Assembly: GCF_023055435.1 (NCBI RefSeq)
Contig: NW_025964383.1
Location: 47,306,001-47,370,000, forward strand
From: Haliotis rufescens
Taxonomy: Eukaryota
Direction of reading: 5' to 3'
DNA: 64,000 nucleotides
A program made the position numbers and the translations under genes. Shown here in pieces: positions 12,194-62,385 of the stretch (positions are counted from its first letter, which is position 1; each line of letters starts with the position of its first letter). The notes under the pieces are model-generated. The model was not told the DNA's origin and did not search any database. It saw only the letters and a program-made list of their open reading frames with translations.

Positions 12194-12459
12194 TGGTTGG
12201 TTGGTTTGTTGTTTTTACGCCGCACTCAGCAATATTTCAGCTATATGACGGCGGTCTGTAAATAATCGAGTCTGGACCAGACAATCCAGTGATTAATGTC
12301 ATGAGCATCGATCCACGCAATTGGTATCGATGACATGCATCAACCAGGTCAGCGAGCCTGACCACCCGATCCCGTAAGTCGTCTTTTACGACAAGCATAG
12401 TCCCCTTTACGGCAAGCATGGGTTGCTGAAGACCTATTCTACCCCGGAATCTTCACGAG
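12194..12459 (-). mobile_element. Family B, full length
   Basis: TSD tttcaatgatt. Confidence 0.9.
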
Positions 12460-12469
12460 TTTCAATGAT

Positions 12470-13624: not shown

Positions 13625-16491
13625 ATGCTGCTGTCTGCTCGGGAGATGATATTCATCGTGTGTTGTATCTGGGTCCAAGGTATGTAGAATATTTGGTTCA
13701 TGATTCAGTTTGGGAGTGTTGACCATAACGTATACGTAATATATATATGTGTCGTACAATTAAACTGACTGTTGTACAAAATCTTACCCAAGCCAATTAC
13801 GACTCCCAGGAGGAAACGATTAAATATGTGTGCTTGTGAGTGAAGGAAAGGAAGGAAGAAATATGCCCAAGTGGATAACTTATAATATGCTTACAAACTA
13901 CACTGTCAGTTTGAGGACAACTTATTTTGAGATAACATGAACATACAAACAACTTCGTTACAAGTCAGTGTGTTCACCTCAAAAAGATTTGGTTGGTTGG
14001 TTTGTTGTTTTACGCCGCACTCAGCAATATTCCAGCTATATGACGGCGGTCTGTAAATAATCGAGTCTGGACCAGACAGTCCAGTGACTGATATCATGAG
14101 CATCGATCCACGCATTTTGGATCGATGACATGCTTCAACCAAGTCAGCGAGCCTGACCACCCGATCCCGTTAGTCGCCTCTTACGACAAGCTTTGTTGCC
14201 TTTTACGGCAAGAATGGGCTGCTGAAGATCTATTCTATCCCGGATCGTCACGGGTAACCTCAAAAAGATTTTTTTTAGTTCAAAATAGTCCTTGATGTCA
14301 GTAATTTCATTACGGCACCAGACTCATGGTCGTGAATAGTGGCGACTACCTACAACATTAAGTTGGCACGCTATGAAATATTGTCAAGAACAGTGTTAAA
14401 CCAAGCTGTCACACTCTCTGTTATCATCAGCGTTGTCATGTGTCCTTCATAGGGATATTCTCCAAAAGGACTCCTGTCCCATGCTCAAAATACTACTGAT
14501 TATCTCTGCTACCCCATACACGTCTAGTATTTTTATTTATGCACAGGCAAAGATGTATTTACAGAGAAACGTTTCAATGAGAGTTTACATGATAAGTCAG
14601 TGCAACATGAGGACGATTCACAATGGTCACACTGGACCTTACCTTCCTTTTGGACAGTGTTCCAATTGTGAAGTAAACATGTCCTTAATGAAATCAGATA
14701 TCACGTTCAGTCTGAATATCTCCGCATGAAAGGTGACTAAGCTAGATGTATTTTCATTGTATTGCAACTCCAGTGGAAATTCATAAAAAATAACAATTAT
14801 TCCTTCAGATCGGCTTCATGTCAAGGCAGATAATATCATGTTACAAAAACCAAGGCGCCTCAGTTCTACTTACAAATGGAAATCTGATGGCAAAGATTAT
14901 TATTACCACTCCTACTATGCCAATGATGGCAGCAAGATCAGATGGCCAGCCAGAAGTGGTTTTCAGGCAGGCCCCTACTGGCAGGGAGACTTGCAAGGGT
15001 TCTACACAGTACATAACATCACAGTCACCAGCGACGACCATACTACATTTGGTGAGCCGATATATGTATCAAAATTAATATAATACCAACCCCTATATGA
15101 AATGATCATGTCCAGTGTTAACAATCTTTCAAGAATCACATTTACTGGGGACATAATGTTTCAGAAAACTATTTATTTCTAAAATCCGAATAATGTACGC
15201 GGCAATTCCACATCAGGCGACCGATTTACGTTGCATGCGTTAAAAAAAACATCTGCTCAAAAGAGTCATTGCATATATTACTTATTATACATAGATAATT
15301 CCAGTATGTTTATGAACAGAAAATTTATCTTGTCTTGGGATTGAACAGCTTACAATGAGCATGTGAAGTGATAATGTATTTATTTGATCAACCAACTGTT
15401 GAGTTGTACGTAGTATATATCGTTTCAATTTCGCAGCTTCAGACATCAGAGATGCGTACATTGGTGTGTCGTCAGTTGACATCAAGTGCCCGGATGACGA
15501 CGTGACCTGGTGTGGTCAATGGCCGGCAGATACATTACCTCGAGAAACCTTGACCTTCAGCTGTTCCCACGTGCAGCCTGTGAGATTCGTGAGGGTCTGG
15601 AGAAACATCACAGGCTACCTGACTGTCCAGGAGGTCGAGGTTGAGGGCACTCCGAGAAGAACAAGGGGTAACTATTGGATCGTGTATCATGCTATACCTA
15701 GAGATTACATACATATACATAATATGTGTTTATGCCAGCTTGATTATACGTGCCTTACTCGACCACCAATCCTCCCAAACACCCTCCCATGATATATAAT
15801 CCATTATACACCCCGGGAAGGACAATGGGTAACTGTTAGATCTTGACTGATGTCATGGCTATAGATAACATCACGGCAGAAAGCCCAAGTGGTGCTGGAT
15901 TACATAAATAGCAATATTTGTCTGTGACTTTCAAGCACAATCATAACGTTCCGCACTGGACCACGTGCCTTCCCACCCTCCATCTCAGTATAAACACAAA
16001 TATATCATATACTATGAATATTCCTACTCATTCACTCGCTCACAAACTAACAGGCGCACTTCTACAGTTATTGCACACAACCTAGATGTGTATTTGTCTT
16101 CCGCTATATCTGAGGATCTGTCACAATAGCACTGCAGTGTGTTGTAAATGAATGCTCCTAACACATCTCAATGCTCCTATTCAACTCATTCAGTGAGCCA
16201 CTGCTTATAGATTTTGCAAAATTCTGTATTTTAGCCGCCAAGTACAACAAGAGTCTTAACAAGAAGCTGTACACACCGCTGACGTCAGTGTATGCCATAT
16301 CAGCCAGTGACTGTGGTATCAAGTGTTACAAGACCCAGCCTTGCCTCGGTTTCAGCTACAATCCATCTGCTGATCCATCCTGTCTCCTTGCGACATCAAC
16401 AAAATCGACAACAGCCACCGACTGGGTTACGTACTCCATCACTGACTGCTCCAACCACATCACTTGTGACCTGACTGATCAGTTCAAATAA
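13625..16491 (+). CDS. Secreted F-type lectin (fucolectin/F5-8C-fold)-like domain plus C-terminal PAN/apple domain protein, 4 exons, 261 aa
   Basis: Exons 13625-13679 (MLLSAREMIFIVCCIWVQ, signal-like), 14809-15051, 15437-15667 and 16235-16491. All introns are GT-AG and phase 1, and the frame is open throughout. ANDG, PYWQGDL, V.NITVT, WCGQW, FSC...VRFVRV and YLTVQEVEV resemble FTP/F5-8C motifs. The last exon SASDCGIKC.....CLGFSY......CLL is PAN/apple-like. AATAAA lies at about 16905. Confidence 0.8.
13991..14256 (-). mobile_element. Family B, full length, in lectin-gene intron 1
   Basis: TSD acctcaaaaagattt. Confidence 0.9.
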
Positions 16492-31839: not shown

Positions 31840-32073
31840 TTTGTTTGCACTCAACAATATTTCGGCTATATGACTATACTCGAGTCTGGACCAGACAATC
31901 TAGTGATTGCATCATGAGCATCGATCCACGCAATTCGGATACGATGACATGCATCAACCAAGTCAGCAAGCCTGACCACCCGATCCCGTTAGTCGCCTCT
32001 TACGACACCCGAGTCGCCTTTTACGGCAAGTATGGGTTGCTGAAGACCTATTCTACCCCGGATCTTCATGGGT
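31840..32073 (-). mobile_element. Family B, near full length
   Basis: Head intact to acccatgaag; tail degraded. Confidence 0.85.
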
Positions 32074-32314
32074 CTACTTGAAATGAAAAAAATAATTGAC
32101 TATTAGAGTAATATACAACTCAAAGGATGTTAAGGACCAAACTCGGGAATATTAATAGAATATGTATGATTTGATAACACTCCAATTTCTTTCCATTGAT
32201 GTTTTTCCCTTTTGACGTTTGTGTGTCTCCAGTATCTAGTGGGCAAATATTTATTGTCTCTGATCTAACACAACATTGAGTTTTAGTCACACTTTAAACT
32301 CGGCATATTTTCAG

Positions 32315-46296: not shown

Positions 46297-47392
46297 GTGA
46301 TCTGCATATGTGTAAGGTCATGTTCTGGATATTTATGCTACATGATGATCGATGCATGTGTGTAATTATAACGTAATGATTTATACATGTAATGTGATGA
46401 TCTATACATTTCACTGACGTTAATCATGTACCGTATATTAATATGTAGATTTAAGTTGGTTGGTTGGTTTGTTGTTTAACGCGCACTCAGCAATATTCCA
46501 GCTATATGACGGCGGTCTCTAAATAATCGAGTCTGGACCAGACAATCCAGTGATTAATATCATAAAATACGATCAACGCAATTGGGATCGATGACATGTA
46601 TCAACCAAGTCAGCGAGCCTGACCACCCGATCCCGTTAGTCGCCTTTTACGACAAGCATAGTCGCCTTTCACGGCAAGTATGGGTTGCTGTAGACCTATT
46701 CTACCCCGGAATCTTCACGGGTCGTAGATTTAAGTACATGTGTAACGAGATGATCTGTCATGTGTTTAACGCAATGATTTATGCATATACCGTCATATGT
46801 ATGTTTGTTACGTGATCTACGCACGTGTGTATCGTGATGATTCACGTGTCTAACATGCTAATTTATGCATTTGCATCACGTGCATATCTATGCTTTTGTT
46901 TAACGCGATGATCTTGACACTTGCGTAACTGGATGATTTATACATTTGCGTAAGGTAATGATCTATGCACTTGTGTAGTGTGGTGATCTACGCACATGAT
47001 TAACGTAAAGATCTCTGTATTTGTTTAACGAGATGTCATTTGCATTTGTGTGATGTCACGTTCTATAGCTATGTTTTTGTATAAAGTGATAATACATGCT
47101 TAAATAAAGTGATGCCCTTTGCATGTGATTGGCGTGATGATCCATCATCTGTGTGACATGATGTGCAAAGCATGTGTGTAAAGTTGTTTGTCTATTCTGA
47201 TGTATGTTACATGTATAATGTGATTATGCATACGTGTGTGCAATGGTGTGATCGATGCACGTGCGTAACGATGAGATACATGCATGTGTGTCACATGTTG
47301 ATCTAGGCACGTGTGAAATGTGAAGATCCATGCATGTGTTAAATATGGAGGTCTATGCTCCTCGACGAACATGTGTTACATGGTGATCTATA
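46297..47392. repeat. Old degenerate ~26-bp satellite interrupted by a family B SINE
   Basis: Recurring tgatgatct/atgcatgtgtgtaac-like units. Confidence 0.7.
46457..46723 (-). mobile_element. Family B, full length
   Basis: TSD gtagatttaagt. Confidence 0.9.
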
Positions 47393-49093: not shown

Positions 49094-51522
49094 GAATCAA
49101 AATGTTGTTCAGTACTCGAATGAACCTTCAGACACCTTCGACAGACCTCACGCTCCATAGCGCCTGCCGACAGGGGAGCATAGAAGGTGTGAGGTACCTC
49201 TTGTCTGACGGTTTAGCTGATATCAACACCAGGGGGAAGAATGGGAGGACGCCAGTCATGGTTGCCGCCTGTGATGGAAACAGGTCCTTGTTCCAACTTT
49301 TGGTGAGGGAAAGAGCTGATCTGCTACACTTGGATGATGATGGCAACAATGTGCTTCATGTTGCCTGTCTTGGGGGCGACTTGGAAATGGTCAGGCATAT
49401 TCTCAAACTTGACATTGTTGACATTAACAGTAAAGGAATGTACGGCAGAACACCAATTATGCTGGCAGCCCGAAAAGGATATAAGACAATCTTTGACCTA
49501 CTCGTTAGCTCAGGATGTGATTTGACGCATGTAAGCAATGATGGCGACAATATTCTTCACCATGCCTGTTTGGGTGGCTATTTGGATATTGTGAAATATA
49601 TCCTTCATGAAAATATTGTTAGCATTAACAGTAGAGGGAAGTATGGCAGAACGCCAGTGATGAAGGCAGCATGGGGTGGACACAAGAGAGTATTAAATCT
49701 CCTTGTGGACAAAGGCGGTGATGTATCCCTCTTTGACAATGAAAATGACAACATCCTCCATGTTGCCTGTATTAGAGGCAATGGAACAATGGTTAAGCAT
49801 ATTCTCTCAAAACAAGTTGTTGGTATTAACAGCCGTGGGAGAAAGGGAAGATCACCACTGATGGTGGCTGCACAAAATGGTAAGAAGGAACTTTTTAACC
49901 TTCTTCTCTGTCAAGGAGGCAACATGTTTCAGACAGACGGTGATGGTAACAACATTCTGCATGTGTCCTGTATTGGAGGCCACCTGCACATGGTGGTGTA
50001 CGTCCTCTCGGGATTTATATTCGACATCAACAGCAGAGGTAAGATTGGACGGACACCAGTAATGCTGGCAGCAGAGAAAGGACATAGACAAGTGTTCAAC
50101 TTGCTTGTGAGTAGAAATTGTAATCTGCATCTTGACGATTCTTGTGGTAACAACATAATACATGTGGCCTGTCTGGGGGGCAGGGTGGAGATGGTGAATT
50201 ATCTTCTTGCATACAACACATTTGGCATCAAGAGCAGAGGCAGAGACGGGCGTACTTCAATAATGTCTGCAGCAGAGAAGGGTCATATAGATGTGTTCAA
50301 GTTGCTGATGAGTAAAGGATGTGATGTAATGCTCAATGACGACCATGGTGATAGCATCCTCCACATTGCCTGCAGTGGTGGCAGTATGGACATGGTTGCA
50401 TACATCCTGTCACTGGGACAATTTGACATCAACAGTCGAGGGAGGTGGGGCAGAACGCTGGTCATGTTGGCAGCAGAAAAAGGAAATCGACAAGTGCTTG
50501 ACTTTCTTGTAAATGAAGGAGGTGACCTGTCTCTTATGGATGATGAAAATGACAACATTCTTCATGTGGCCTGCATTGGTGGAAATGTAGAAATGGTTAA
50601 GCACCTACTCCAGATGAACATCTCCAACATCAACATCAAAGGAAAGTATGGTAGAACACCAGTGATGTTGGCAGCAGAGTTTGGTCATATAGAACTGTTT
50701 TACTTCCTTGTGTGTAAAGGCAGCGACTTGTTGCTTGTGGATGACAATAGAGACACCATCCTTCACATTGCTTGTGGAGGAAATGTGAAGATGGTCAAAT
50801 GTCTTCTCTCACTCGATGTTATTGACATCAACAGCAGAGGTAGCCACGGTAACACCCCCGTCATGACAGCAGCCAGTAGAGGAAACAGGGGAGTGTTTGA
50901 GTTGCTGGTGAAGAAACAAGCAGATCTGTCTCTCCTGAATGAGGATAACAATAGCATCCTGCATGTAGCATGTATCACCGGGAATGTCAGCATAGTCAAC
51001 TTTCTCATCTTAAAGCATGCTGTTGACATTAACAGTAGAGGGAAGTATGGTAGGACTCCGGTGATGTTGGCGGCAGAGTTTGGAAACAGTGAAGTGTTTG
51101 ATCTGCTTGTTCAACATGGTGCAGATATATCCCTGAGAGATGATGATAGGAACAACATCCATCATGTCTCGTGCAGTGGGGATAATGTGAAGATCATAAA
51201 CGTTGTTCTGATGAAGTGCATGTTTCACATCAACAGTAGAGGACATGGTGGAAGGACTTCATTGATGTGGGCCGCAGAGAAGGCACAGACAGGCGTCTTT
51301 GACTTCCTGTTGAATAAGGGAGCTGATGGAACTCTAGTGGATGATGATGGTGACAACGTCCTTCATGTTGCCAGTGCAGTGGGTAATGCTGATATCGTGA
51401 GACATATCATCTCCAGGAACATTGTGGACATCAACGCCACAAATAATTATGGATCAACGGCAGATATGATAGCAAGGGGAAAAGGCCACTACTCAGTGAG
51501 CAATATCTTCCATGACAAGTGA
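49094..51522 (+). CDS. Long single-exon ankyrin array (about 24 repeats; 806-aa ORF from ATG 49102)
   Basis: Uninterrupted ORF of alternating GRTPVMLAA and NILHVACxGG repeats. A gtattctttcag acceptor ends at 49093 (phase 1, in frame). Confidence 0.93.
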
Positions 51523-52393: not shown

Positions 52394-54984
52394 TTGTGGC
52401 AAAAAGTGATTTTTACATCTACATCACAAGTGATGACGTTCCTTTCACACTGATTCAAATGACATGCCGTAAGTTGCCACATGTGCAGACGATTTCCCAT
52501 CGTCGGGGCATGTACTCTTACACCTGTTGCAACCAGTCGCTTGTCTGAGTGGCACTTTGCGAACGATTTCTTAATGTGATCGTTCTGACTTATCTCTTCT
52601 GTGCTGGAGTTGTTGCCAGAGCAGCATCGGTCATCGATGTTATGTGTTTGTTGGTTTGGGCCCACAATCTGTCATCAGCAAAAAGTGGTCATGTTGCACA
52701 TAAACGTTCATCACGTTGCAGACGTTGCATGATCAATGATATGCCATCCTAAATGTATCAACATGCCTTAGAAAGTGTCTTCGAGGAAGATAAGATGCGT
52801 CTCATCACACCCGAATGTGAGTGGCAATAGTAAATCTGGCATACCATCCCTAGAACGTGCTGTCCGAGGTCACGTGCTTAACGTCTGTCACAATGTTGTG
52901 TTTCGGAGTTATATTTCTTCGGAAATCTGGCAATATCAATAACTTACTTTCATTGTCAGACATTGGTGTATTTTAGTAATAGTCCCAAACTCACTACAGA
53001 AACGATTTCAAACATCACAATTCATTTCTATTGCATCAAATGTTAGTGTCAGAAACTATCACAACAGCTCGACAGTGACGTGTACATATCTATTGTGTTT
53101 CAAATGTACAGAATAAATTATGTATAGAACAAACAATTTTTATAGCCTATCACATAAAATCATGGTGAACTATACCCTATTAAGAGACATTATACTACGC
53201 ATTGTATATCGGTAGAGCCATAGTCAGGTGTTGTTCGCGATTTTATGCCAATGTATTCTCACTGTTAGCTGAATACACTCTGCCTGCATTTTTTACAAAG
53301 AGGAACGAAACGATGCATTTATATGAGTTCTTTATAGATAAGACATATAAAAAAAACGGGACCAGTAAATAATAATTTTCCCTGCCCACAATATCATTAA
53401 TTCAGACTTCCTCAAAGGAAACAGTTTGAGAGCAGTTTGTATTTGGCATGTTTGTAAAGGGGTAGGACGAGTAACTACATGTTATGCACAGCACACAAAA
53501 CATGCCCAGCCCTGCCCAGGTATATGGTAGAAGGTAGTAATAAGCATAGGTTCAAAACTGCACATTAAATCAGTTTGTTCGTCATTCTAGGGAACATTTA
53601 TGTTTGAAATACAATAACTAACGCAATTCAATGCAAGAATGAGACGTGTATATGTCAGGTGCCAAGGGTCAATGAATAGCTTGATCTTACAACACATAAA
53701 TATGAAGGGACATTGTCGAGCCACAGTCAGGTGCCAAGGTTCAGTGCATATAATAATCTTACAACACAGAGATACGGAGGGACATTTTTCAACTCCAGTC
53801 GACTCGTAGTCTTTTGAGATAAGGACAAAACTATCCATGCACATGAGATATTTGAGTTTACACTATCACTGTCAAGTCAATGGTTACAATATCTAGTTAT
53901 GCATCGACACATTTTTAGAGGGGAGAACCAATTATGTTATATTTCAGGTGCGTTAACTAAGCATAGTTGCATGAGTTGCATAAATGTCTCCTTTCTGCAG
54001 AGAACATTCTCCATACGACAGTACAGATCTCCCGACCACGCGACTTGTGAAGACTGTGGAAAAAATACCATAGCCATGTATTGTTTGAGAGGCATTTCTT
54101 TGAAGTTAACTTATGACAAAGTAATAATTGTCACAGCATTGAAGTAGAGAAATGTAAACCAGTTAAGAAAGATGCTGAATACTAGATTTAGTGCCCTTAC
54201 CTTTGGTTCTCTGGATCATGTTCCATACCTTGGACATGGGCGTGAATGTATTTTTGACACATAATTTCGCTAAGATTGGCGTTTACTTTGTTTAAACGTT
54301 CGCCTTGTTTTAGTGTTTAAAATGTTTAATTTTTTAAATTATGGACCATAGGATGATGACGGATATAATGCTCAGCCTTTTTCCTCGCCTTCATAGCTTG
54401 TTTGTATGTGGGAAATTGCAGATGACTTTGGAACACATTCTTCAGCTATCTTGTTGAGTTCATCAGAAAAGAATTGTATTCGATCACGAACGTCAGTAAA
54501 GCGATCAGGTGTTTGCCTGTACAGAGAATGTCATACAGAGGCGAGTTGGCTTCCTTGAAGTTCCATCGAGATGATGGAGGAACATATGATGGGGTAATAG
54601 TGTTTAATGTCACTTCCACAGAGGTTATCGTGAACTGACCACTCAAATTCATTCAGCAGGTTGGAATCGGTAACAATCAAATCCAAAGAAGAGTATGTGC
54701 CTGTACCAGGATGTAAATATGTTTTTTGAATTATCGTTTAAAATGCATAGAGTTTTGTTGAAAATAAAATCTTCTACGGAGCTTGTCTCTTCTGCTTGTA
54801 TGATCACAAAGTCAAAGTGGATTATGACCGTTCATATCGTCCATTATCATACAGGGCTTAGGAAACTGGTCATAGAGAGCTTGACGATCGGAGGAGATGC
54901 AGATGGAGGAATGTAAACAGATCACAGAGTAAAAACAATTTGCATGGTGAAACAAACTGTGATAGCTTGTAGAGGAACATTGAG

Positions 54985-55340
54985 GTGAGGTGAGGTGAAA
55001 TGGGGTTTAACGTCGCATCCAAGATTATTGCACTTATATAGCGACGTGCATGTACGTGTGTGTGTTTGTGTGGCTGCTTGTACTAGTCCGGACTGATGCC
55101 GATTTATAGTGCTAGCTCACTGAGATACCATGCTACAGTTGAACATGAATACCCCACTCAGACACAGTAAACTGACTCCGAGCCGACCAGTCCTTGTTTT
55201 AGCCCCTTAATGCCGAGCGCCAGACAGGGTAACAACAAGTACCATCTTTTAACGTCGTTTGGTATGACGCGGTCGGGGATCGAACACCGGACCTTCCGCT
55301 TTCCGGGCGGACGCTCTACCACTAGACCACGGAGGCGGCC
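54985..55340 (-). mobile_element. SINE family C, full length, nested in the LINE ORF2 remnant
   Basis: TSD gagga(a/g)cattgag. Confidence 0.9.
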
Positions 55341-56511
55341 GAGGAGCATTGAGAGGACACAGGGCTATGAATAACACCCTGCTTCACCAAGATAGTAGAA
55401 CCTCCAGTTGCTTTATCCCCTGGAGGTGAAAAGAAATGATAGGAATCGTATTGTTTATTGTTTAGTTGATATATAGTTTTAAGGTAAGTTACTGGCAAAC
55501 AAATGGCTGATGGCTTGAAATCTTGTTTTCATTGCTGCAAATCATTAAAATTGTTTAATAGTCCTCTGCAATTCCATTGTATGATAGGGTTAGAACAGGT
55601 CATAGTGGTTCTGCTGAGAATCTTGATCAGGACTGATATTGAACCTTAACAGGTGCTGGCTGAGAAGAAGGCACATCCAAGTGTTAGAGGGCCTTGGCTG
55701 TTTTTTTAAGTTTCTTTTTTTTTCCTTTTTTGTTAAATGTGGGTCTCTATGAATTGGAGATGATTCTGGTTCCAATGTTTTTGATTCCACTAGCTCCGTC
55801 TGTGAAGCTGATGTTGCTTCGTGTTGCTGGAGATGTTTGGGCTGTATTGTCTTTTAGAATCTGCTGATTATCAACCCAAGAGATGGTTGTTTGGCATCCT
55901 ACTGATACTGTGGCAGCCTTGACACCAGGAGTGACAGTTACTGCTGCTGATTAAGATTTTGTTAAGTTTTGGGGAGATTGTGACTGAACTAGCTTCTTAG
56001 CATCATGAAAAGAGTTATTATTAGTGTGTTTAGTTGTTAATATTTGCCATTTAGTGGACAAAGTTTGGATGGGGCCAAGCGGTCTCTATCGCAATTTGCA
56101 CACTTTATGGCATCAGTGCACTCTGTGCTCTCATGTGAGCCACGGCAGCGCACACAGACAGTGCTGAGAGTACAGGTATTGGCACCATGTTCAAAATGTT
56201 GACATTTATAACTTCGGAGTGGGTTTGGTACATAAACTTCCAAGCCAATATTAAAGTACCCAGATTTGATTGATTTAGAACTTGTTGGAAGAACCGGGCC
56301 CATTCTACCACCTGTCTAGGTGAAGTTAGGGTCACAGTTGTGTGTTTGGCAAAGGAACACAGTTCCAGGAACCAGTGCTCTCAACTACCAGACTACCTTC
56401 CTCCATCGACACAGGGGCGCAACACACGGCAAACGGATTGCCCAATTTGGTCGCCTTTTACGACCAGCAATTGGGTGCTGAGGACACATTCTACCCCGGG
56501 TCCACACGGGG

Positions 56512-56569
56512 GAAGAGCTTTTAGCGTTACCCGGCACTTACCACGGGGAGGTTGCCCTTCACGGGTGCC
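56512..56569 (-). ncRNA. Candidate HDV-like self-cleaving ribozyme at the LINE 5' end
   Basis: Minus strand reads GGCAC CCGU GAAGGGC A ACC UCCCCGU GGU AA GUGCC GG GUAACG CUAA AA GCUCUUC. This gives P1 GGCAC/GUGCC, P2 GAAGGGC/GCUCUUC, P3 ACC/GGU, L3 UCCCCGU, P1.1 CC/GG and J4/2 GCUAA, in HDV nested double-pseudoknot order. Confidence 0.7.

Positions 56570-61719: not shown

Positions 61720-61773
<54 letters not shown>
61720..61773. repeat. (ACT)n microsatellite
   Basis: Direct reading. Confidence 0.95.
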
Positions 61774-61774
<1 letters not shown>

Positions 61775-61782
61775 ATCCTACT

Positions 61783-62050
61783 GACCCGTGAAGATTCTGG
61801 GGTAGAATAGGTCTTCAGCAACCCATGCTTGCCGTAAAAGGTGACTATGCTTGTGGTAAAAGGAGACTAACGGGATCGGGTGGTCAGGCTCGCTGACTTG
61901 GTTGATGCATGTCATCGATCACAATTGCGTGGATCGATGTACATGATATTAATCACTGGAATGTCTCGTCCAGACTCGATTATTTACAGACCGCCGTCAT
62001 ATAGCTGTAATATTACCGAGTGCGGCGTTTAACAACAAACCAACCAACCG
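61783..62050 (+). mobile_element. Family B, full length, inserted beside an (ACT)n tract
   Basis: TSD actaatcctact. Confidence 0.9.
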
Positions 62051-62154
62051 ACTAATCCTACTCCTATTACGATGACATCTGCGAAACAACAAATAAATCA
62101 TCAACAACAACTACTACAACCACAACAACTACTGCACTACCACTACCACTACAG

Positions 62155-62385
62155 CCTCTGAAAGATTCGGGATAGAATTAATCTTCAGCAACCCATGCTT
62201 GTTTTTGAGAAGCGACTAACAAGATTGGAAGGTCAGGCGCGCTGACTTTGTTGATGCATGTCATCGTATCCCAATTCCGTAGGTCGATTCTCACGATGTC
62301 ACTGACTGAATTGTTTGGTCCAGACTCGATTATTTACAGACCGCAGTCATATATCTGTAATATATTTGTGAATTAGGCGTCAAAC
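62155..62385 (+). mobile_element. Family B, older variant with a single hairpin module
   Basis: Diverged match; lacks the 22-bp internal duplication seen in the other copies. Confidence 0.8.

Follow-up and report, generated by a model that had tools for sequence, protein, structure and literature searches.

A stretch of 64,000 nucleotides of the Haliotis rufescens genome (assembly GCF_023055435.1, contig NW_025964383.1, positions 47,306,001 to 47,370,000; hereafter the window) carries a structured RNA module, here called X, at 56441-56512 on the minus strand, within the 5' untranslated region (UTR) of a decayed I/Ingi-like long interspersed element (LINE). Module X is the 5'-terminal module of several lineages of retrotransposons without long terminal repeats (non-LTR), both I/Ingi-like and RTE-like, and the head of their bipartite derivatives. 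A sequence-only reading of the window had proposed a selected RNA fold common to the LINE 5' UTR and the head of a tRNA-less family of short interspersed elements (SINEs), and the present analysis bears this out with three covarying helices. Judged by its sequence and pairing pattern, X appears to be an undescribed RNA fold, distinct from the known 5'-terminal retrotransposon modules. We give about an even chance (0.5) to the reading that it is an RNA-level 5'-end module, which would act in cis to set or guard the RNA 5' end.

Location and secondary structure of module X

The motif lies directly 3' of a hepatitis delta virus (HDV)-like fold, as had been claimed, the fold occupying 56513-56569 and X 56441-56512, and the minus-strand sequence that had been quoted for it is identical to that of the locus. 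The location first given, 56441-56511, was right except for its edge: module X begins one base more 5', at 56512. The loop-1 word CGGGGTAGAAT (up to one mismatch) was counted 7 times in the window and the hairpin-2 word 11 times, the expected numbers being 0.43 and 0.05.

From 5' to 3', X consists of G1, a C-run, GU, the 5' strand of hairpin 1 (H1), a G-run, UAGAAUAN and the 3' strand of H1, followed by helix a (4 nt), a C-rich strand b (4-7 nt), a', hairpin 2 (H2; GUCG, a 7-nt loop, CGAC), an A-rich linker and a G-rich strand b'. The whole measures about 75-90 nt. In the window LINE these parts are placed as follows.

56441-56512 (-): module X of the LINE, matched by covariance models R1 and R2 (90 bits with R1)
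56507-56511 (-): CCCCG, 5' strand of the proposed helix S1; inferred partner CGGGG at 56494-56498, just 5' of UAGAAU
56500-56505 (-): GUGGAC, 5' strand of H1; partner GUCCUC at 56480-56485, from covariation
56486-56493 (-): H1 loop (L3), UAGAAUGU
56476-56479 (-): helix a, AGCA; partner a', UGCU, at 56466-56469, from covariation
56470-56475 (-): strand b, CCCAAU, inside the a/a' loop; partner b', AUUGGG, at 56441-56446, crossing a/a'
56450-56464 (-): H2, GUCG-UAAAAGG-CGAC, 4-bp stem and 7-nt loop U-N-N-R-A-G-G, T-loop-like, near-invariant
56513-56569 (-): predicted minimal HDV-like ribozyme (Rfam RF02682) at the LINE 5' end, directly upstream of X and separate from it

Pairing was assessed on a mollusc-only set (33 LINE and SINE heads), on an alignment of 16 diverse sequences (A4) and on one of 84 distinct sequences aligned by model R2 (A5), which, being fitted to the model, leans toward the structure. 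Since b and b' are not placeable in fixed columns, a swap test was also used, in which own helix partners were compared with partners from other families (53 families).

Within the mollusc set, three of seven H1 pairs had changed on both sides, and the covariation score, 0.254 against 0.127 in shuffles, was reached by none of 500 shuffles. The stems read UGGAC/GUCCA and UGGAA/UUCCA in the LINE, GAAGAUC/GGUCUUC in SINE B, and GGGGAU/GUCACC and GGAGAU/GUCCCC in older SINE families; the copy at 62155 has AAGATT/AATCTT, as had been read. The earlier claim that the stems co-vary thus stands for hairpin 1 (0/500 shuffles), whereas the inner stem of hairpin 2 is only conserved. The companion claim that the loops are conserved has to be divided in the same manner: loop 1 varies, several LINE subfamilies having GGGGCAGAAT, while the hairpin-2 loop keeps its U-N-N-R-A-G-G form.

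Once other taxa were added, the covariation sought in a wider alignment became strong. Of the cells in A4, 94% are paired; pair 9-52 (H1) occurs as UA, CG, AU and GC, and pair 54-67 (a/a') as AU, UA, GC and CG. In A5, both-sided changes were found in 12 of 13 pairs, including all four of a/a', and the observed score was reached by 0/500 shuffles. In the swap tests the matched partners were equalled by 0/2000 permutations for H1, 0/2000 for a/a' and 4/2000 for b/b'; the last helix takes the forms CCUGA/UCAGG, CCUGG/CCAGG, CCUCCU/AGGAGG, CCCCU/AGGGG and GCCCC/GGGGC in other families. As b sits in the a/a' loop while b' lies 3' of H2, b/b' crosses a/a', and the 3' half of X is a pseudoknot with both helices supported. 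A different pseudoknot had been suggested by the sequence-only reading, between GGGU of loop 1 and ACCC of the linker; this pairing gave no signal (530/2000 permutations), and the linker C-run has its partner in the G-run 3' of H2.

The H2 stem is invariant in A4 and 97% paired in A5. Its loop variants (UAAAAGG, UAAGAGG, UAUGAGG, UACAAGG, UGAGAGG) all retain U1, R4, A5 and the G-C closure, and by this sequence pattern (U1, A5, a purine at 4, G-C closure) the loop looks like a T-loop.

In addition, the six nucleotides at the 5' end, G-CCCC-G, may pair with the G-run of the H1 loop as helix S1, which would form a first pseudoknot, since S1 and H1, the latter shown by covariation, can coexist only in this manner. 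S1 was the minimum-energy helix by RNAfold in 4/4 LINE variants; the C-run and G-run are present in nearly all parsable families, the final GG belonging to the search pattern, and compensated forms were seen by eye in single families (CCGAG/CUCGG, CCCAG/CUGGG, CCUG/CAGG).

The host LINE and its predicted upstream ribozyme

The LINE at 54171-56569 (-) is a decayed, internally deleted copy with no long open reading frame (ORF), in which about 880 bp of the ORF1 region are missing compared with a copy on another contig (locus L013, contig C12). That copy, 5.3 kb long, represents the full element, with ORF1-like frames, APE and RNase H, and ends 3' with a stem-loop followed by a (CACT)n tail. Model RF02682 gave 21.4 bits (E 0.12) on the decayed ribozyme copy of the window and 28 bits (E 0.0014) on the better one of L013, both below the gathering score of 44. 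Drawn by eye on L013, all HDV helices of the predicted ribozyme could be placed, P1 being GGCACUC/GAGUGCU with G1.U, L3 UCCUCGU and P2 GAAGAGC/GCUCUUC. The first base of the L013 LINE is G1 of this fold and adjoins a 12-bp target-site duplication, ATCCCAGTTTCA.

The 3' part of the upstream ribozyme was kept in 27/27 LINE-type copies of the motif seen, 11 of which had been found via an internal LINE region and therefore carry no bias toward having a head. In the mollusc LINE, X has C rather than G at +1.

Distribution beyond the mollusc genome

Metagenome contigs of the Joint Genome Institute (JGI) were searched with the pattern GGTAGAAT, 20-45 nt, CGTAARAGGCGAC, a first, stricter pattern having given 0 matches. 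With the looser pattern X was found on at least 120 contigs; the 80 of them with names listed come from 23 data sets, and 53 distinct X families were distinguished among the matches. At least two matches look like chance: L105 precedes an asparagine synthase frame, which points to a bacterial origin of the contig, and L100 is without other features of the module. The contigs carrying X are eukaryotic, with LINE ORFs and a gene with a BIR domain present. Few copies were found independently of the pattern, and in one of them UACAAGAAU replaces UAGAAU.

The 20 differing flanks of the largest metagenome family switch to conserved sequence exactly at GCCCCGTG, and a second multi-copy family has the same sharp 5' boundary. 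Both start with G-CCCCGUG and have no ribozyme upstream; because the differing flanks end where X starts, X is the extreme 5' end of the elements in these two families. Elsewhere X heads a single-ORF LINE with APE and reverse transcriptase (RT) and an RTE-like motif (L131, L184), whose open frame starts 57 nt after X and whose APE is 18% identical to that of the mollusc LINE over 133 aligned residues. It also heads a two-ORF LINE (L141), with an APE 37% identical to the mollusc one. Most of the lineages carrying X have it as their terminal module.

In three metagenome families (L143:2895-2925, L194, L183) a tRNA-like stretch (GGTAGTCTAGTGGTAAC...) follows X directly, in which ARAGORN calls no tRNA; this layout would be X ahead of a tRNA-derived SINE part.

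Structure and origin of SINE B

Copies of family B read (G)ACCCGTGAAGAT... at their start, in agreement with the sequence-only reading. Further X heads were located in the window at the positions below; the head at 61783 and the four further ones score 43-78 bits with the covariance models.

46460-46723 (-): full SINE B copy, 264 bp, with X head at 46628-46723 containing a duplicated H2, 3' stem-loop and (AACC)n tail; target-site duplication ACTTAAATCTAC on either side
61783-61878 (+): X head of a further SINE B copy, found by covariance model
62153-62227 (+), 31981-32074 (-), 14162-14256 (-), 12367-12461 (-): other X heads, found as covariance-model matches

The copy at 46460-46723 (-) is bounded by its duplication of 12 bp, and for this reason the motif is the true 5' end of SINE B. 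Across the 1.33 Gb and 615 contigs of the genome, at least 4,800 candidate copies were counted. The top 40 have 93-95% identity, and for 39 of them the match starts no more than 3 bases from the first base of the query. The description of the SINE as tRNA-less was upheld, ARAGORN calling no tRNA in the window and Rfam giving no tRNA match at E up to 10; neither tool detected a tRNA or another RNA polymerase III (Pol III) head in SINE B.

The last 75 nt of SINE B share 39 invariant columns of 79 with the 3' stem-loop of the LINE. This stem-loop, with the core ATATRGCTGRAATAYTGC, is common to the LINE at L013:3296-3372 (-) and to SINE B at 46456-46532 (-) of the window, and its stem shows a compensated change, GGC/GCC against AGC/GCU. 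With an X head and a LINE-type 3' stem-loop both related to LINEs, SINE B is a bipartite non-autonomous LINE in the sense of Kojima (2018; PMC5786205): a LINE-homologous 5' part, a LINE-homologous 3' part, target-site duplication and repeat tail were all found. A 5' self-cleaving ribozyme was suggested in that paper as a possible reason for which bipartite elements retain LINE 5' ends. Since the tails differ, (AACC)n in SINE B against (CACT)n in the window-type LINE, the true partner of SINE B is probably a sister LINE.

An origin of the SINE head from the LINE 5' end by loss of the ribozyme core was considered on account of an apparently supportive 10-nt match, ACCCGTGAAG. It is unlikely, because the series of stems connects that of the SINE with hairpin 1 of the LINE itself; moreover, older SINE families begin CCCCCGTGGAGA or ACCCTGTGGGGA, near the LINE's internal X start, and X-headed elements elsewhere have no ribozyme. 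A likeness by eye of the SINE middle part to 5S rRNA found no Rfam 5S match.

SINE B subfamilies differ in how often a 22-nt unit (a' and H2) is repeated in tandem, from one to three times (window 46628-46723 (-); L039:2400-2520); in our sample, subfamilies with two units were about as common as those with one. A young subfamily with many copies, seen at window 46628-46723 (-) and about ten loci (L037, L045, L050 and L057 among them), has GGTCTAC for GGTCTTC and thereby an A.A mismatch at the second H1 pair. At L088:48-1495 lies a satellite that arose from the SINE head: 50-bp units, at least 29 in tandem and derived from roughly the first 48 nt of SINE B (the H1 part), lead into a normal SINE B copy. 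A (CTA)n microsatellite at 61720-61782 (+) of the window stands immediately upstream of the SINE B copy at 61783.

Comparison with known RNA classes

The 5' ends of non-LTR retrotransposons are known to carry RNA modules of two kinds, ribozymes (HDV-like, twister-variant or hammerhead) and protein-binding RNAs that are clade-specific. Rfam 15 has no entry for X: at gathering scores nothing was found in the window and in 15 loci, and no match fell on the module at E up to 5-10. The sequence-only reading had not been able to place the motif on the hammerhead, HDV, twister or pistol consensus. Models for twister, twister-sister, pistol, hatchet, hammerhead and hairpin ribozymes gave no match on the LINE and SINE heads (E up to 10) or on eight metagenome loci (E up to 5), and no HDV-type model gave a match covering X alone at E up to 5-10; the RF00094 match on L013 (22 bits against a gathering score of 50) belongs to the upstream ribozyme and runs on from there into X. 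No description of X came up in text searches for the motif words and related concepts, the matches to motif words being only by chance.

The HDV-like ribozymes at LINE 5' ends (R2, RTE, Baggins/LOA, L1Tc/ingi) resemble X in being compact pseudoknotted RNAs at the exact 5' terminus, starting with G, in occurring in RTE-like and Ingi/I-like clades, and in being kept by bipartite non-autonomous derivatives; the first nucleotides of X may also form a terminal helix ending in G1.U beside a purine-rich joiner. Unlike them, X does not have P3/L3, P1.1 and P4 in HDV order, its joiner (UAGAAUAN) contains no C, and it possesses a second pseudoknot and a T-loop-like hairpin instead. X was therefore rejected as an HDV-like fold: only P1-like and P2-like helices appear in order (A4, by eye), and the joiner is without the catalytic C. 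The pairing of the X 5' end with the 3' G-run, which would serve as an HDV P1-type helix or as a tRNA-like acceptor stem, showed no covariation in the swap test (matched mean 9.04, swapped mean 9.17; 1308/2000 permutations).

A tRNA-like cloverleaf was rejected as well. The single-unit SINE head is 72 nt long with pairable ends (GACCCGU/ACGGGAU), yet there is neither acceptor covariation nor a tRNA match by ARAGORN or Rfam. ARAGORN called no tRNA on X, either in the window or in 40 loci; its sole call, a tRNA-Glu(CUC) gene (L121:420-585), ends 25 nt upstream of a 5'-truncated X copy. By eye, Pol III A and B boxes are not present in X, as only the GG and G..RA..C positions fit and T55 and C56 are A and A.

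Pr77 of the trypanosomatid elements L1Tc, NARTc, ingi, RIME and SIDER is, like X, a 5'-terminal module of about 77 nt common to a LINE and its non-autonomous partners. It is an HDV-like ribozyme and DNA-level promoter confined to trypanosomatids, whereas X has another fold and sequence and occurs in animals. The bipartite non-autonomous LINEs of Kojima (PMC5786205) and the R2 SIDEs (PMC3414825) share with SINE B a LINE 5' module, a LINE-type 3' stem-loop, a microsatellite tail and the lack of a small-RNA-derived head; in SINE B, in contrast, the retained 5' part is X alone, without the ribozyme of the window LINE. The 5' pseudoknot and protein-binding RNA of R2 lies, like LINE X, just downstream of an HDV-like ribozyme. 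It differs in being clade-specific and known from no SINE head, with protein binding shown, and it is likened to X here by fold and position. Viral exonuclease-resistant RNAs (xrRNAs) would be similar if S1 holds, as a pseudoknot involving the very 5' nucleotides would give a sharply defined RNA 5' end; X is not known to match the flaviviral or plant-virus xrRNA classes in sequence or secondary structure. The twister-variant ribozymes of Perere-3 (PMC8501958) are likewise non-HDV structured RNAs at the 5' end of an RTE-clade LINE, but X lacks the conserved twister words (GUCCCAAGC, GUAAA, GAGGG) and has no Rfam twister match.

Proposed role at the RNA 5' end and competing explanations

An RNA-level 5'-end function is our best reading of X, since X is the sole conserved sequence at the 5' border and a promoter acting in DNA only cannot explain three compensated helices. 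Elements would be transcribed together with upstream flank, and their RNA would end up beginning at G1 of X by one of two routes: X could halt a 5'-to-3' exonuclease at its edge, like viral xrRNAs, or it could cut itself at its 5' edge. S1 would lock the 5' end into the fold. The two routes receive about equal weight. Self-cleavage has precedent at LINE 5' ends; we lean slightly to the exonuclease stop, because it is the only 5'-end mechanism fitting the mollusc LINE, in which the ribozyme stands upstream in every copy seen. HDV-type cleavage leaves a 5'-OH, which is not taken by Xrn1-type enzymes, so that an exonuclease stop at X would leave the ribozyme in place, while a self-cutting X or a start site at its edge would shed it. 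The further-reaching form of the cleavage route, in which X would be a new class of small self-cleaving ribozymes that cuts before G1 and replaces the HDV-like ribozyme in I/Ingi-like and RTE-like LINEs and SINEs across animal phyla, seems unlikely; under it, the X of the mollusc LINE, preceded by an HDV-like ribozyme and with C at +1, would have lost the ability to cut.

Several observations weigh against a 5'-end function or the evidence advanced for it. X changes compensatorily in the mollusc LINE even though it is internal there, and it has thus some role independent of being the terminus. The retention of the upstream ribozyme in all LINE-type copies speaks against efficient self-cleavage or transcription start at X in that element. 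Covariation of S1 was not significant (209/2000 permutations, ~0.10; 485/3000, ~0.16), and the young SINE B subfamily propagates despite the A.A mismatch in H1. The search pattern required GGUAGAAU and the H2 word, whose conservation outside the mollusc is in part so by construction. Small-RNA runs (n=3) gave 1-19 reads, and one contig run cannot show ends or strand. Exonuclease-resistant RNA in retrotransposons was not found described in the literature searched.

X remains under structural selection in the mollusc LINE, even though the HDV-like ribozyme there would already make the 5' end; this is accommodated by another explanation, namely that X is a binding platform for LINE protein(s) or the ribosome, comparable to the R2 motif or to the leader of an uncapped RNA with the properties of an internal ribosome entry site (IRES), the 5' end being set otherwise and SINE B capturing the LINE machinery via X. 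R2 RNA has a conserved 5' pseudoknot that is bound by R2 protein, and HDV-like folds can reportedly promote translation, a result ascribed to Ruminski et al. 2011; the frame with APE and RT in L131 and L184 begins shortly after X, and SINE B joins X with a LINE-type 3' stem-loop. Such a platform leaves unexplained, however, why X with its G1 stands exactly at the 5' terminus both of LINEs from unrelated clades and of SINE copies numbering thousands, and no signal remains to make that end. A common partner protein is improbable for LINEs with and without ORF1 whose APE domains are so divergent, and a SINE needs no translation. We regard this explanation as the main rival, although an unlikely one.

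Much less probable is that X is a heavily remodelled tRNA-derived head that is still a Pol III promoter for the SINEs and was captured by LINEs. X is about the size of a tRNA (75 nt in L167); GGUAGAAU, a word that tRNA-Gly carries at the same position, stands at about +19 to +26; H2, as a G-closed 7-nt loop U-N-N-R-A at about +55 to +63, is T-arm-like; the a/a' loop of annelid-type families resembles an anticodon loop (UUCCUGA); and the consensus-like SINE B copies read by eye (e.g. L041) contain no run of four T. All these likenesses meet the negative results of ARAGORN (window, 40 loci) and of the Rfam tRNA model (E up to 10), the acceptor-like pairing without covariation, and the misfit of A-box and B-box positions, T55 and C56 included; furthermore, a LINE of 5-6 kb cannot be a Pol III unit, yet retains X. 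An internal RNA polymerase II (Pol II) promoter acting at DNA level only (initiator and downstream elements), with incidental pairing, would agree with the recurrence of CGTG-containing words at LINE and SINE starts and has a precedent in the internal promoters reported within the first 77-190 bp of I/jockey-type LINEs and of L1Tc (Pr77) (PMC3383444, PMC1874656). It is nonetheless very improbable, as helices kept paired by compensation across 53 families are inexplicable at DNA level and a start site at the X edge predicts LINE copies without ribozyme, which were 0 of the 27 seen. Finally, SINE B might have copied a piece of LINE 5' UTR by chance, X being a passenger and the likeness a matter of recent common descent. 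SINE B copies are young and single copies decay neutrally, but the same genome holds older SINE families with other H1 stems, as listed above, and X is retained with compensatory changes in many organisms and two LINE clades; this explanation is already contradicted by the cross-taxon covariation and is hardly credible.

X stands out among 5'-terminal modules by its two covarying hairpins and a helix crossing one of them, by its absence from Rfam 15, and by being common to two very different LINE lineages and to SINEs with thousands of copies, in many organisms. Were X to cut itself, it would represent a new ribozyme class; were it to stop exonucleases, it would be the first case of a cellular retroelement with the trick of viral xrRNAs. 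Either of these, if true, would explain the precise 5' end of SINEs that have no Pol III head. Further uses of X are as a compact RNA in 5'-end engineering and in annotation, where it marks a whole group of LINE and SINE families.

Neighbouring reading frame

Adjoining the decayed LINE, an open frame of 806 aa at window 49102-51522 (+) consists nearly entirely of ankyrin repeats (Ank_2, E 2e-139).

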